DNA from: Zygophlyctis sp. KS116
Taxonomy: Eukaryota > Fungi > Chytridiomycota
NCBI GenBank assembly: GCA_054661495.1
Contig: BAAFSQ010000431.1
Span: 1 to 6,638, forward strand
Direction: 5' to 3'
Length of the DNA: 6,638 bases
The translations under genes were made by a program, and so were the position numbers. Within the stretch, counting starts at the first letter, position 1. Every line of letters begins with the position of its first letter. Of this stretch, positions 1 through 6,626 are shown piece after piece. The notes under the pieces were generated by a model. The model had not been told where the DNA came from. It saw only the letters and a list, made by a program, of their open reading frames with translations, and searched no databases.

Positions 1-247
1 TTGAAATATGAAATTAGAGATCGCTTGGTGGATAAAGATCTCCCTGAAGATTTGGATTCTTATGTTACAGCAGTTGTAGATTTGGATAATCGATTATATC
101 GGTTAAAACAGGATAAAAGGATAAATACTTTCAATTCTAATAGTTTTGTCCCTCGGTTTTCTACTGCCTCAAATAATTCTACGTCTTCTGTTGTTCCTAT
201 GGATATTGGTGCTTTAGAGTCAAGAAAAGCAGTTGTGGATAAACCCT
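1..247 (+). pseudogene. gag: Ty3/Gypsy retrotransposon Gag, C-terminal part (5' piece, interrupted by the DNA transposon; continues at 4884)
   Basis: Frame 1 reads LKYEIRDRLVDKDLPEDLDSYVTAVVDLDNRL...VVPMDIGAL, matching the fungal Gypsy Gag pattern (end of capsid region, 'D.RL', then the 'PMDI/PMEI' motif before the zinc knuckle). The stop at 250-252 lies inside the left TIR. Confidence 0.85.
246..247 (+). repeat. Putative 2-bp target-site duplication CT (second copy 4882-4883)
   Basis: Flanks read ...AAACC-CT|TIR ... TIR|CT-TCTATG. Keeping one CT gives AAA CCC TTC TAT GTT (KPFYV), in frame with both gag halves. Confidence 0.75.
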
Positions 248-279
248 CTTAATCGGCCGACAAAATTTCTCATGACGTA
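248..279 (+). repeat. Left terminal inverted repeat
   Basis: CTTAATCGGCCGACAAAATTTCTCATGACGTA versus the reverse complement of 4850-4881, CTTATTCGGCCGAAAAAATTTCTCATGACGTA: 30/32 identical. Confidence 0.93.
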
Positions 280-309
280 ATTAAAATTTGCTTATTACTC
301 TTCTAACCC

Positions 310-428
310 TTATACTCTCTTATACTTTATTATACTCTCTTATACTATTTGATTTCAATCTTCAACTTTCAACTTTCAACTTATTCTCTCTTATACTCTT
401 TGATTTTAATTTTCAACTTTCAACTTTC
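310..428 (+). repeat. Subterminal nested tandem repeats
   Basis: 10-bp unit TTATACT(CTC/TTA/ATT) x4 at 310-349; 48-bp direct repeat 330-377 / 381-428 (44/48 identical, period 51); 7-bp TTCAACT units at the end of each copy. Confidence 0.85.
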
Positions 429-637
429 GGAAAATTATTAGACTTTTTATTTTCAAGTCACAACTTATCACGGCTAGTCCTTCCGTCGATGGGCCCACCT
501 CCACTTCGTTCCGGACCCTTCGCGACGCGGACATGACGCCTTCGCCTGCGGCTGGCTCTTGGAAATAAATCAGGTCTTTCGTGACAATGTCCTAAATTTT
601 CGCTGGTACACTCAATATCATTGCATAAAAAATCAAA

Positions 638-2896
638 CTAATGAAACGTTGTGTATTTATTTAGATCACTACTCCAAGTTTGAGGAATTTTCTTTGAGTT
701 GAGGTATTCTTCCACATCATGCATGTACTGAAATGCACCTTTGAGGCTGGATTGCATAGCTTTGAGTTGCTTGAGGTCATTCTGATGTTGATCTAATTCT
801 TTTTTCAAGAAATCCATCAGAACAGCAATCTTTGAATGTGTAATGGCAGCCTCTTTATCTTTTTCTAATATAGCAGCTTCAAAAGTATTTTCTAAACTAT
901 ATGATTGAATAAGATTGCAGAAATTTGAAGTTGAGTCAATACATTGTAATTGATTCGCTTTTAAATCATTCAGGATAATAAAAGGATAATTATCTCTGAG
1001 AACAATTTCTGAAACAAATCTTGGTTTAAAATTTACTGCTGTCACCAAATGCTTGCATAGAAAGATTGTCGAGTAAAAAAAGTGGTTACAGCTGCAAAGC
1101 CATTTCTGAATATCAACAGTGGCGTTAGTTTCTTGATTTTCACTTTGACTTGCAATTTCCCATTCTCTTAGCATTTGTTTGAACCAAATTGGGTTCCTTT
1201 TTTTAATTTTGGTTTGCTCTAATTTCAATTGAAATGAGGGTAGTAGCCATTTACAAGTGATCATCAAACACGTTTTTAAATTCTAAAATTAGTAATTTAA
1301 TAATACAGGGCGTCCAAACATGGTAAAAAAATCCCTTTTGAGAATACGGAAATGAGATTCCGCGAACATTGAAGTTCTATATCTGCATATAGAATCTTCT
1401 CGTGCTGCTCTCATCCAAATTTTTGAGTAATTCAGAGAATACCATTCATGGTATAGATAAGAAAAGGCATCTGCCAGTTTTCTTTCTACACAGTATCTAA
1501 TAATTTCTTTAAAGGATTCGTTCCTTATTTCTAGGAAAGATTTTCCCAAATCCCCCAACATAAGTGAATGCCTTAGAAAATGATATTTAACAATATTCAG
1601 AATGTCATTCACTTCTTCTGTGGATGGAATCAAAATTTTTGCATTTAATTTGGCAGTTTTTATCAAATTGATGATATCTTTTTTTGCTAAATCATCTAAA
1701 AGTAATTCACTGAAATTAAAACAAAAAATAAGTATACACTGAGAGATCCATATCCTTGAGTTTTTTTGGATTAGATATCCTTTTTTTAATGGCTCTTAGG
1801 ACATGCCAAAGGCAAAGATTAATTGTGCTCTGAGGCCAAACTTCTCTAGCGGCCCATATCTGTCCTAAATCCTTGTCCATTTTTATAAAAGTGGGCTGCA
1901 CGCCATAAGAGTTTAAATAAGAAAACCTAAAATTATGCAACTATATATTACCATTCCTTTATAGCTATTTTTCTTTGAGTTTCTTGAACCTTTCTTTCCA
2001 AATACAAGTAGCTTGCGGGGTAACCTTCTCCACTATACAAAAGAATAATAACAAATAGTTCAAAACCTTCCCTATTTGATTTGAAAGTTGAATCGACAAA
2101 TAAGTATGTCGAATCCAAGTCTATAAATGATGTGAGGAAGCATATATGTTCTTGGGCCATATTTAATAAGATACTTGAATATTTATATGATTCCAAAATA
2201 GATTTTCCGTCAAAATTTTCATTTGAATTTACTTTCTGCCAAATATAATTTATCTGAAGTTATTAAGATGAGCTACCTGAGATAAAGTTAAATTAATAAT
2301 TCGATCTTGTTCTTCCCTTGATTTCAGCTCCTTAAAGATCAGTGCAGGAGGTAGACGATGACTTAAGTCTTGAATTTCCAACTTTAGGTCATCGGGTAGC
2401 CCATTAGTGTATGGATCATGACTGAGTTCGTGCTTTACCAAAATCGTTATATATATATCCGAAAAATGAACTTTAACTTCACCATTGCACAAAAATCTTT
2501 CTTTACCATAATTAAGCCGTTTTCTTTTTTTTGGCGATAAAGTTTTAAGAGCCGTTGATTGACAGCAATAGCCATAAAGGTGATCCTCTTTACTTTTATC
2601 AAATCTTTAATTAGAACATGTTATTACCTAAATTTAAATTTGTATTTTTCATATATTAATTCGACAAATTCAATGCCAAATTCTTCCAGAGTGTAATCCA
2701 GTAGCGCTTCTCTTGGGAGAAGAATATATGCTATAGGGAACAAATCAAGATTGATAATCGATTCCAAATTATCTTCAATATATAATGGTTCAACTAGAGG
2801 ATTTTTGAGACAGTGACAACATATTTTATTTAGTTTAGCTGTAGCACTCACATGTTTGTGAGGCAGCGTAAACTTTTCACATTTTGGGCAGTACAT
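638..2896 (-). CDS. Mutator-like (MULE) DDE transposase with SWIM zinc finger, ~711 aa; exons complement(2628..2896, 2277..2604, 1952..2253, 1738..1926, 1307..1709, 638..1282)
   Basis: Five GTA..AG introns (2605-2627, 2254-2276, 1927-1951, 1710-1737, 1283-1306) join six ORF pieces into 2136 nt in frame. Motifs: N-terminal CPKC..CCHC; FAR1/WRKY-GCM1-like YCCQ..RFLCNG..H..H; LFVDSTF (first D), KMDKD (second D), CLWH (Mutator CxxH), TSMFAESHF (E), SWIM CSC..CKH. Confidence 0.92.
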
Positions 2897-2951
2897 ATTA
2901 GAAATCACCTAAATACCCCTGAAACTTCAAAAACTCAAAAAACAAAAAAAA

Positions 2952-4700
2952 TTAATTAATCATTTCTTTATTTATCCTGTACAAATTAAGACGCGCTCTA
3001 CCTTTAGCAGTATTGCATATATCCATGCAATGTCTTTTCTTTAACATGAAAATTTCTTTCCCCAAATTTCTATTAGAAGAAGATATACTTACTTCCACAT
3101 CTGCAAATTCGATCATTTCCAATAATCTAAATAAATTGATAATTTGATATGAATCTTTTAAAATTTTAGATCTAATAATATCAGACACTGAGATTTCCCT
3201 TCCCTTTAAATACATAATTCTTTGAACCATAAAAGAAACTTCTGGCGGCGGATTAATTGCTAAAGCTTGCAGATCTCCGGATAGATCTAATTGTTCTTTA
3301 TCGAAGGAATTGATAGTTCCGTCTTTCAAAATAATCCTATATTTTTCAGTTTTTTGAGATACCTTTGACGCATAAAACATAAACCTAGTGCAAGTGCCTT
3401 TTCCAAAAAGATTTGGGAAATCATTAAATCAATATCATCACCTGCCAGGGCCTTAAATTTCAAAAAAGAAACAGCTTACTCCTTCTAGAACATACAAAAC
3501 AGCCGCCAATCTTAAAACTGTGGCAGGCAGTTTTGCATGTTCTGCAATGTAAAAATCATCGTTTGTGGATTTCCTTTTTTCGTTTATATTATTATAAATT
3601 TGATCAAAGCTTTTTTCCTCTGGAGCAAACACAATTTTAAGAGAATTTTCCTACCAATTAAATTATTAAATTACGTTAGAAGAAAAATCAACTTTTCGTA
3701 ATTTTGAATGGAAATTTTCATATATTGAGGTATACAAATCTGTCTCTTTAAAATAGAAAATACCTTCCAAAATACGGCAATCGAATTGATTTTGACGTAT
3801 CACGTCGAATGTAACAAAATCATTCGAAAAGCACGTTGATATAAATCTAGCAATTATATCCATCTAATTACCTTTCCATGAGCCCATCATGATTACGCTC
3901 ATCCATATTAAGATATCGAATAACAGTTTCCGGGTGAACGCAACCAACAAAATTTAATGAGACAGAGGGTATTTCAATTATTCCCTTAGTCTTAGTAACA
4001 TTCTTAAACTTTCCACCTCCATGAAAGTTGAGGTACATGTTTCGGTATTTGTTATCATCTACAATTTAAAATTAAATTTTACCTTTGACTGAATATAATC
4101 GATTAAAAAAATCTTCAGCCTCATTAGAGACTTGCAAAATTTCTCCTTTGTTTACACTTAATTGGCTTGTAAGACCTTCTAAAGTCCCATCTAAAAATAT
4201 CAAATCAACCTGACTTGATATGCCATCAAGTGGGGCTGTCAAAGTTTTTAAGATTGGAGTCTTTTTAGACCCCTTCTTCCCAATGAGTAAACTAAAAAAT
4301 ATAACGGGCTCTTCCCATGAAAGATTTGGATCGGGTTTGACGTAGCAGTTCGAACCCATTAATAAAGAAACAATGGGTATAAGTACGGCTAAAATGGCGA
4401 TGGGGTCTACTGCTAGTGAATCACCTACCATTAAAAAATCAAAATTACTTATTTTTTTCATTAATGAAGCTGTTAGAGGGCCACAACAGTTCTCAATTGC
4501 AGGCACAACTCCCAAGCAGTCATATATTCTTTTTTTTATAATTATTAAATTACCTCTGCTTGACAGTTTCATCAAAATCTTTTTTTACTTTTTTCTTTGT
4601 TGGCCTAATATATTAATTAATTTATATACGTTTCTAGACTGAGCATTGAAATGCTCCTTTTTAGCGTAGGGGTGGATTCAGAGTTTTCAGCCGTCATCAT
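2952..4700 (-). CDS. DUF3987/YfjI-like P-loop ATPase (helicase-like), ~523 aa; exons complement(4630..4700, 4554..4604, 4083..4528, 3872..4058, 3675..3846, 3480..3650, 3363..3451, 2952..3336)
   Basis: Seven GTA..AG introns (4605-4629, 4529-4553, 4059-4082, 3847-3871, 3651-3674, 3452-3479, 3337-3362) give 1572 nt in frame. Motifs in DUF3987 order: WEEPVIFFSLLIGKKGSKKTP (Walker A), DGTLEGL, LQVSNEA (Walker B-like), LNFVGCVHP, DGLMERF (Arg finger, created by splicing), KLPATVLRLAAVL; Lys-rich NLS-like PTKKKVKK near the N-terminus. The gene structure is more certain than the family name. Confidence 0.82.
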
Positions 4701-4849
4701 TTTAAAATTTAAATAGGGTTAGAGACGCGACGCGAAAAGCCGTCGGGGTTGTTTTTCAATGACGAAATACTTGTTTTAACCAATCAGAATAAAGATAATA
4801 TTCCGTAAATTCAAAGTTGAAAAAGAAAATTGAACGCGAGAGTTGAACC
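4701..4849 (-). promoter_or_regulatory. Compact putative promoter of the element, between right TIR and the ATPase ATG
   Basis: 149 bp. ACGCGACGCGAAAA at 4725-4738 (two ACGCG cores plus CGCGAAA, MCB/SCB/E2F-like), CCAATCAG at 4780-4787, another ACGCG at 4834-4838. Confidence 0.45.
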
Positions 4850-4881
4850 TACGTCATGAGAAATTTTTTCGGCCGAATAAG
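4850..4881 (-). repeat. Right terminal inverted repeat
   Basis: TACGTCATGAGAAATTTTTTCGGCCGAATAAG, inverted copy of 248-279 with 2 mismatches. Confidence 0.93.
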
Positions 4882-4883
4882 CT

Positions 4884-4984
4884 TCTATGTTGTGGATACA
4901 AAAGAGCAATGGGATGAGATTCGCAGAATGTACCCTGATGAAAGAAGAAAAACATGTTTTGAAGAAAATAGATGTCATTATTGC
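4884..4984 (+). pseudogene. gag: Ty3/Gypsy Gag continuation (3' piece), ending at a truncated zinc knuckle
   Basis: Reads (F)YVVDTKEQWDEIRRMYPDERRKTCFEENRCHYC, the typical 'ER.R....n.C.YC' lead-in to the CCHC knuckle; the H and last C are missing; frame stops at 5021-5023. Confidence 0.8.
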
Positions 4985-4988
4985 ATAA

Positions 4989-5099
4989 GGATCAAAAGTC
5001 ATTCCAGCAAAGGCTTTGGATGATTCCGGGGCTATGGGCTTTGCGTACATGGATAGTAAGTTTGCAGAAGAAAATAATCTTAGGCAAGATTGCATATAA
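4989..5099 (+). pseudogene. Retropepsin-type aspartic protease fragment of Gypsy pol
   Basis: GSKVIPAKALDDSGAMGFAYMDSKFAEENNL with the DSG catalytic motif at 5022-5030, matching 'ALxDSGA...FID..FA...NL'; truncated by a stop at 5097-5099. Confidence 0.8.
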
Positions 5100-5287
5100 C
5101 TACTTTCTTATCTCTCATTTATTCACATTTTTGATCGGTTATAATATTCTAAATATCTATCAGTAGGACTTCAGAATGCTATTAATTTGCCAGTTTCCCC
5201 TTGGATTTAATCAATATTTCCAAGAAGTTTTTACTGTGTAACTCAGTTTTCTATACAAATCTATTATGATACATTGGCAAAGATTAT

Positions 5288-5841: not shown

Positions 5842-5992
5842 TTTTTCGACGATCCAAATGCACAGCGGCATGCCGCAAATGCATTGGCTAGATTGAAGCA
5901 AGGCAAAAAATCTTGTCTGGCCTTCGCTACTAAATTCAGAAAGCTGGCTAATGAGACCGGCCAGTAGCTTCTTCAGAAAGGGATTGAATGAT
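5842..5992 (+). pseudogene. gag: Second Ty3/Gypsy Gag (Retrotrans_gag-like capsid) remnant
   Basis: FFDDPNAQRHAANALARLKQGKKSCLAFATKFRKLANETG (stop 5965-5967), then frameshifted FFRKGLND; matches 'F.DP.....A...L..LkQG..S...Y...F..LA...G......F..GL'. Weaker upstream traces (KEPQIF ~5497, KVEFIS ~5668) may extend it to ~5485. Confidence 0.85.
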
Positions 5993-6275
5993 TTTTCACA
6001 ACAAAAATCCTTTGACAGACAATCATCTATTGAAAATTATTCCCAACAGAATAGAGATGCTGCTGTTCGTCGGTCGAACGAAGATGTAGGATGGGAAGAC
6101 GTGGATATTGATTACAACGAATTCTGGGAGGACTACCATCACTTGGATGTACAGGTATGTTTCATTGAATTTTTTCATCAAAAACAATTCTAATTTATTA
6201 TGATTTCTTTTGGTACTTGAATTATAGCATTTCCGAGTTAAATGTGTGTCCCAACTTGTAATGACGAGCCACAGG

Positions 6276-6626
6276 TTAGTCCCTAGTATTATGAAAATGA
6301 AACACTGTAACAGTCTTAACATTAGGGCACTTGCTGTTAACATACATACTATATAAACTACACATAAACTCTGATCGTCCCAGAAAAAAACGCCAGTGAA
6401 AAAGATCTTGATTCTTGATATCGTGCTGTTGCTTCTTTTTTCGAATTCTTTCGTTCGCTTCTTCGACATATTCCGATTTACTATTTCCATACAGAGGCTG
6501 CGAATCATAAATGAAGTTGCCCATTTTCTCTGGCGTACTATTAGAAGCTTCTTCTTGGTATTTGTCTTCCCCAGTAAACGCTCCTTCACTTTGCCATATA
6601 CTGCTCAGCTTCTTCCATCCTTTTTT
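6276..6626 (-). other. Unassigned open frame (possible exon or decayed coding sequence)
   Basis: Stop-free frame KKGWKKLSSIWQSEGAFTGEDKYQEEASN...EEANERIRKKKQQ...; protein-like charged composition, no recognisable motif; overlaps a second open minus frame (6023..6589). Confidence 0.2.

Follow-up and report, generated by a model that had tools for sequence, protein, structure and literature searches.

The 6,638-nt stretch of DNA analyzed here (contig BAAFSQ010000431.1 of the chytrid Zygophlyctis sp. KS116, referred to as the window) harbors an autonomous two-gene Mutator-like DNA transposon, in which a Mutator-like element (MULE) transposase is accompanied by a DUF3987 AAA+ ATPase. The element spans positions 241-4888 on the minus strand (4648 bp). 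It is virtually certain to be a real mobile element, and the ATPase is very probably a dedicated partner of the transposase. The first-pass annotation of this DNA, made from the letters alone, proposed a new transposon type. This is too strong, since the transposase and the 9-bp target-site duplication (TSD) place the element inside Mutator/MULE; it is a new lineage of Mutator elements whose partner is of a new class, and it does not form a superfamily of its own.

Ends and genes of the element

The boundaries of the element are given by empty sites. Contigs from two runs join position 231 directly to 4889 and lack exactly 4657 bp, which corresponds to an element of 241-4888 plus a 9-bp TSD (Table 1). 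The TSD register is symmetric about the terminal inverted repeats (TIRs) and restores the reading frame of the gag-like target. The two TIRs, which form the best inverted pair within the window (94% identity), each stop 7 bp short of the element end, and the outer 7 bp of the two ends are unlike, with no inverted match. Thus, the TIR pair of the first-pass annotation is real, whereas its element ends, set at the TIR tips (248-4881), are not the true ones. Ends at the tips with a TSD of 2, 3, or 4 bp (Kolobok/CACTA/Harbinger-like) are ruled out by the 4657 bp skipped; a 2-bp register at 248/4881 would delete 4636 bp. The subterminal repeats, which are present in the sister families too, are candidate transposase binding sites.

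The element family also occupies other sites in other samples, since one contig of run X3 stops exactly at 4888 and another contig links the left element end to a different flank. In other samples, both genes are found on one contig or on two overlapping contigs with ~99.7% identity. The gag-like target, presumably Ty3-like, has a depth of 500-980 in its relics (1-231 and 4898-5100) vs 38 in the element. Its frame is interrupted by the element and decays after ~121 codons, and no Pfam match was obtained for the target piece.

Exactly two genes lie between the ends, both on the minus strand and open from start to stop after intron removal. The introns are of the GT-AG type and 23-28 nt long (nine in the ATPase gene and five in the transposase gene), and the two genes are 52 bp apart (2900-2951), in agreement with the tightly packed, co-oriented pair with intact spliced frames and tiny introns described at first pass. 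The splicing is predicted, the introns being supported by sister families that share their position and phase. When the window was spliced anew with proteins of these families as queries, the introns came out unchanged; the intron at 3763-3740 was recovered with one of two query proteins and is present at the equivalent point of four sister loci. Database searches and fold predictions employed single exons or natural open reading frames (ORFs), and joined spliced models were used only in local comparisons. Across families, the intergenic gap is 7-207 bp (7 bp in sister locus L018, 2045-2051). In most of them it is below the size of a promoter plus a terminator, which suggests one transcript or a promoter within the ATPase gene.

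A single transposase exon of the window matches the MULE profile (PF10551) at 3.4e-5, and the transposase ORF of sister family L013 matches it at 9.6e-10, above cut-off. Judged from its residues, the transposase holds the complete MULE catalytic set, comprising D254, D318, and E481 (conserved in all intact families), C339xxH342, W462, and a SWIM finger from C561; the predicted MULE and SWIM assignment therefore stands. The CxxH motif is an invariant CLWH, and two invariant tryptophans lie ahead of the catalytic glutamate. The protein also carries an N-terminal C4 cluster and a C..C..HxxxH cluster.

A single ATPase exon matches DUF3987 (PF13148) at 3.9e-7, above cut-off. The protein has an AAA+ core and a C-terminal winged helix, the arrangement described for the superfamily 6 (SF6) helicases of DUF3987 (PMC4889955), and one DUF3987 protein is a demonstrated ATP-dependent 5'-3' helicase (PMC11724360). 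By alignment, the ATPase retains the Walker A lysine, the Walker B glutamate, the arginine finger R244, and the sensor II R340. The Walker B pair is asparagine-glutamate (NE) in all 25 members of the clade, against aspartate-glutamate (DE) in the animal-like relatives and most of the bacterial ones. With only two genes between the ends, no AEP or DnaG primase is linked.

The predicted model of a sister ORF (predicted local distance difference test, pLDDT, 65) matches AAA+ proteins only and weakly (Foldseek E ~0.01, Z up to 7.8). MCM, ClpX, ORC/Cdc6, and TnsC are tied, and AAA+ clades are not resolved by these scores. The expectation of a DUF3987 protein with an MCM-like AAA+ fold is thus borne out by the exon match, with the fold search agreeing at the level of AAA+. 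Armadillo-repeat matches to the PDB were dismissed as sums of weak repeats. In the tree, a wide distance separates the element clade from an animal-like clade, both of them well supported; the bacterial rows number two, too few for conclusions on origin.

Table 1. Features of the window (positions are those of the whole stretch)
Feature	Position	Strand	Basis or remark
High-copy gag-like ORF (target, outside the element)	1-231	+	Frame resumes at 4898 after element removal
TSD, left copy (9 bp)	232-240	+	Empty-site joint and TSD registers
Transposase-side terminus beyond the TIR, AAACCCT	241-247	+	Identical in sister families L004 and L013
Left TIR	248-279	+	32 nt; begins 7 bp inside the element
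Subterminal repeats (10-mers, 51-bp duplication, TTCAAC motifs)	309-438	+	Mirrored at 4795-4848
MULE transposase gene (712 aa)	638-2899	-	Spliced model, exon profile matches
Transposase exons	2899-2628, 2604-2277, 2253-1952, 1926-1738, 1709-1307, 1282-638	-	Spliced model
DUF3987 AAA+ ATPase gene (507 aa)	2952-4700	-	Spliced model, exon profile matches, fold
ATPase exons 1-5	4700-4630, 4604-4554, 4528-4449, 4424-4083, 4058-3872	-	Spliced model
ATPase exons 6-10	3846-3764, 3739-3675, 3650-3480, 3451-3363, 3336-2952	-	Spliced model
Winged helix-turn-helix domain (last ATPase exon)	2952-3336	-	Model pLDDT 84; matches winged-helix folds
Walker B pair, N168-E169 (NE instead of DE)	4120-4125	-	Alignment
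Walker A, G116-T123 (GKKGSKKT)	4258-4281	-	Alignment
Right subterminal copies	4795-4848	-	Inverted-pair search; motif as in 309-438
Right TIR	4850-4881	-	32 nt; inverted-pair search of the window
ATPase-side terminus beyond the TIR, AT plus five family-specific bases	4882-4888	-	End comparison
TSD, right copy (9 bp)	4889-4897	+	Empty-site joint and TSD registers

Sister families and co-inheritance of the two genes

Five further families harbor both genes (L004, L013, L014, L015, and L018). They were found by searches with ATPase exons, followed by retrieval of the contigs, and stem from metagenome assemblies (aquatic where stated) of hosts with tiny introns; they may all fall within one narrow lineage. 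The transposase is directly downstream of the ATPase, on the same strand, in all five contigs long enough for both. Intron positions are common to the families (lengths 21-33 nt), and the TIRs are 25-32 bp long and recessed 7 bp. The transposase-side end AAACCCT is found in three families (window, L004, and L013) and is near-identical in L015, and the ATPase-side end begins with AT and is then family-specific. L013 is complete and flanked by a 9-bp TSD, the L004 family end is present in three different flanks, and the flank of L006 equals the right flank of L004 over 9 bp.

The ATPase and transposase trees of the six families have the same three splits, and the pairwise distances of the two genes correlate (Mantel r 0.67, exact p 0.008) in what is a small set of six taxa. 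Identity to the window is 46-68% for the ATPase vs 39-49% for the transposase, with values of 68% and 49%, respectively, for L004. In both genes, nonsynonymous divergence (dN, 0.05-0.53) is far below synonymous divergence (dS, 0.4-3, near saturation in most family pairs), with ATPase dN/dS pairs of, for example, 0.22/1.94 and 0.052/0.44. On these substitution patterns, both genes are under purifying selection, with the ATPase the more conserved of the two. Both are decaying together in L013 and L014.

The five sister families, the identical trees, and the purifying selection show that the ATPase is not a one-off capture. The first-pass annotation had proposed a dedicated partner, to be checked by repeated adjacency and congruent trees, and had named a Pack-MULE capture confined to this copy as the contrary outcome. 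Adjacency and congruence are what was found, and a one-off capture is ruled out by an intact transposase and a full-length ATPase under selection in six families.

Scans of prokaryote and viral genomes with either gene gave no match. A first metagenome scan was blank, one of its search patterns being intron-derived, and a second returned one short locus. A bacterial origin was rejected for L016, which comes from a metagenome-assembled genome labelled Bacteroidota (GCA_039797175.1), as its genes are interrupted by introns and do not differ from those of L004/L005. L016 is a spliced eukaryotic element contaminating this assembly, and its proteins thereby receive a false bacterial name. At L005:955-1046 / L016:2665-2690, the ATPase ends of two families lie head to head, 8 nt apart, and the short flank of this junction also adjoins the opposite end in L015. 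Element ends are possibly preferred as targets in this one case. In L014, relics of other MULE transposases adjoin the element (2065-3076 and 1-84).

Relation to known elements and to other DUF3987 genes

The element shares with Mutator/MULE elements (MuDR, Muta1, Mutyl, and VANDAL) the MULE DDE domain, the CxxH motif and tryptophan, the SWIM finger, the 9-bp TSD, and subterminal repeats, and with Mutyl a second co-oriented ORF (mutB). The TSD of 9 bp, observed in the window, in L013, and in L006/L004, falls within the 8-11 bp that characterize Mutator/MULE. In contrast, the second gene here encodes an AAA+ DUF3987 ATPase, and a survey of MULEs mentions no helicase or ATPase (PMC6446971). The TIRs also differ, being 25-32 bp and recessed from unlike ends instead of long (often >100 bp) and end-reaching. 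However, short-TIR and non-TIR MULEs exist, so that long TIRs are typical but not required (PMC6446971).

AcademH and KolobokH are likewise TIR elements that combine a DDE transposase with a helicase-type enzyme. The AcademH helicase belongs to superfamily 2 (SF2). That of KolobokH is a RecQ, also of SF2 (PMC9587614), and the AcademH TSD is 9-10 bp (PMC10045372). Unlike these, the present element has a MULE transposase, a separate SF6/MCM-like AAA+ gene, and a variable 9-bp TSD (TTAA in Kolobok). The ATPase has the Pfam family, the AAA+ core, and the C-terminal winged helix in common with the SF6 helicases of DUF3987 known from phages and integrative elements (AgaPH, N4 dns). It differs from them in its spliced eukaryotic gene, its NE Walker B, its DDE-transposase partner, and the lack of a primase partner.

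In IS21 (IstA/IstB), Tn7 (TnsC), and Mu (MuB), a DDE transposase and a dedicated AAA+ ATPase are encoded in one element, and the AAA+ partner governs target choice and activation. The pairing of a DDE transposase with its own AAA+ ATPase is the same, whereas these elements are prokaryotic, their ATPases fall into a different AAA+ clade, and none of their transposases is MULE-like. The IS256 family (ISCth4) resembles the element in its related transposase, its 8-bp TSD, and its 6-8 bp spacing between TIR and strand transfer, but it has a single ORF, relies on host replication, and takes its spacer from the flank, whereas the outer 7 bp are fixed per family here.

A DUF3987 gene is also paired with a transposase in an animal. 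In Clytia hemisphaerica, such a gene adjoins a CxC5+KDZ transposase inside an intron of a UBR gene. The Clytia element (L019:7710-13280, 5571 bp) has 38-nt TIRs recessed 4 bp, an 8-bp TSD, and an 86-bp subterminal tandem array; its DUF3987 gene is divergent from the KDZ transposase and has an intact Walker B (DE). In the corresponding DUF3987 cluster, four or more annotated copies come from Clytia, on contigs that differ in length, and a rotifer-rich DUF3987 cluster is present in the Atlas. The marine DUF3987 contigs L008-L011, which are short or carry lone genes, gave no transposase or KDZ match. On L009 (1-600; 1401-3005), 30-bp and 22-bp tandem arrays precede an intronless, animal-like DUF3987 gene; no transposase is present within 6 kb, and the gene perhaps belongs to a non-autonomous or larger element.

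Since the partner is MULE in the window and KDZ in Clytia, the DUF3987 module is found on at least two DDE superfamilies and is not peculiar to one lineage. The Clytia case also accounts for "uncharacterised" animal DUF3987 genes as transposon genes. It is a doubtful, if possible, generalization that DUF3987/MCM-like ring helicases constitute an unrecognized portable transposition module of eukaryotes, adopted by several unrelated integrases (MULE, KDZ, and possibly Crypton tyrosine recombinases). Such a module would let TIR elements encode their own replicative or ATP-regulated route, for which the only precedents to date are bacterial transposons.

Literature searches, with most subscription papers outside their reach, returned no description of a MULE-DUF3987 pairing, nor did the searchable literature yield a eukaryotic DDE transposon that encodes an AAA+ ring ATPase. 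Among the papers found to mention DUF3987, titles and abstract openings refer to prokaryotic or phage contexts only. It is quite improbable that the pairing has already been entered in Repbase, Dfam, or the subscription literature. Of these features, the first-pass annotation saw the gene pair and missed the true ends, the TSD, the Walker B substitution, and the KDZ pairing in an animal.

Possible roles of the ATPase

It is tentatively proposed, with somewhat less than an even chance, that the ATPase acts as an element-encoded helicase on transposition intermediates. This role is favored because IS256 kin copy out via host replication and other eukaryotic DDE lineages have acquired helicases. 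The co-inheritance of the two genes, the retained ATPase motifs, and the SF6-helicase layout of the protein also speak for it. In the IS256-family transposases, which are kin of MULEs, a figure-eight with a 6-8 bp spacer is resolved by replication (PMC7780238), and helicases are carried by eukaryotic DDE lineages other than MULE (PMC9587614, PMC10045372). The transposase would bind the TIR and the subterminal repeats, cleave 7 bp outside the TIR, and link the ends to the two target strands with a 9-bp stagger. The DUF3987 protein would then assemble an MCM-like ring, contact DNA via its winged helix, and unwind the nicked or strand-transferred element as a helicase/translocase, allowing host polymerases to copy the element out or fill in. 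The likeness of the recessed TIR to the IS256 spacer is a lead only, and the recess may be just a free linker between the cut and binding sites. The element is small (4.6 kb), intact, and has recent insertions, and it therefore makes it possible to ask directly if Mutator elements of eukaryotes can transpose by copying or under ATP control; for MULEs, given their IS256 kinship, this is a long-standing question.

Several points weigh against a helicase role. Muta1, the sole MULE studied in vitro, is excised by a hairpin cut-and-paste route with no helper (PMC5499845). The element is devoid of a primase or polymerase, the usual partners of DUF3987, and its NE Walker B may render ATP hydrolysis slow. 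No circle or end-to-end joint was present in the contigs, although this is a weak test, and no RNA runs containing element DNA were found. In addition, the sister loci were all located via the ATPase, such that close transposase relatives devoid of the ATPase would be missed.

The invariant aspartate-to-asparagine change in Walker B, with the remaining motifs kept, would favor a long-lived ATP-bound state. The ATPase could accordingly be a slow switch of the IstB/TnsC/MuB kind, forming oligomers on the target, where it would bend or mark the DNA and bring in or activate the transposase, a role considered possible but rather unlikely. Both TnsC and ORC/Cdc6 belong to the tied matches of the fold search (Z 6.8-7.8), but these scores fail to separate the AAA+ clades, the sequence is DUF3987/MCM-like and outside the IstB/TnsC clade, and the Clytia relative retains DE. 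Insertions within or beside repeats (the gag target, the L005 end 8 nt from the end of another family, and L014 inside a MULE relic) are consistent with target selection by such a switch. However, nested insertions arise by chance in repeat-rich genomes, and no target consensus is apparent among the 7 flanks seen.

Less probably, the ATPase serves steps that follow or accompany the chemistry, stripping the transposase from the product, clearing chromatin at the ends, or countering silencing like VANC/MudrB. Accessory genes of this kind are known in MULEs (PMC6446971), transposase removal has already been proposed for the IEE helicase domain, and the presence of a single module alongside a MULE as well as a KDZ transposase points to a task that does not depend on the partner. 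On the other side, a specific partnership would account equally well for the strict co-divergence of ATPase and transposase. A passenger gene, captured from a host or virus in Pack-MULE style or hitchhiking as a selfish gene with no help to transposition, is very improbable, as the ATPase is full-length, spliced, more constrained than the transposase, congruent with it in its tree, and decays alongside it in the dead copies L013 and L014.

Several minor observations were made in the contigs and the window. In the source run, much deeper contigs match both subterminal regions (window 434-4813) and are possibly short non-autonomous derivatives, and much deeper contigs match parts of the ATPase (window 4158-4374) and represent paralogous families. 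A 4539-nt contig of run X4 has only the element end in common and is likely another sister family, and a 7.3-kb contig of P0027 has an ORF layout like that of the element. At the right end of the window (5951-6589), short ORFs are present on both strands.

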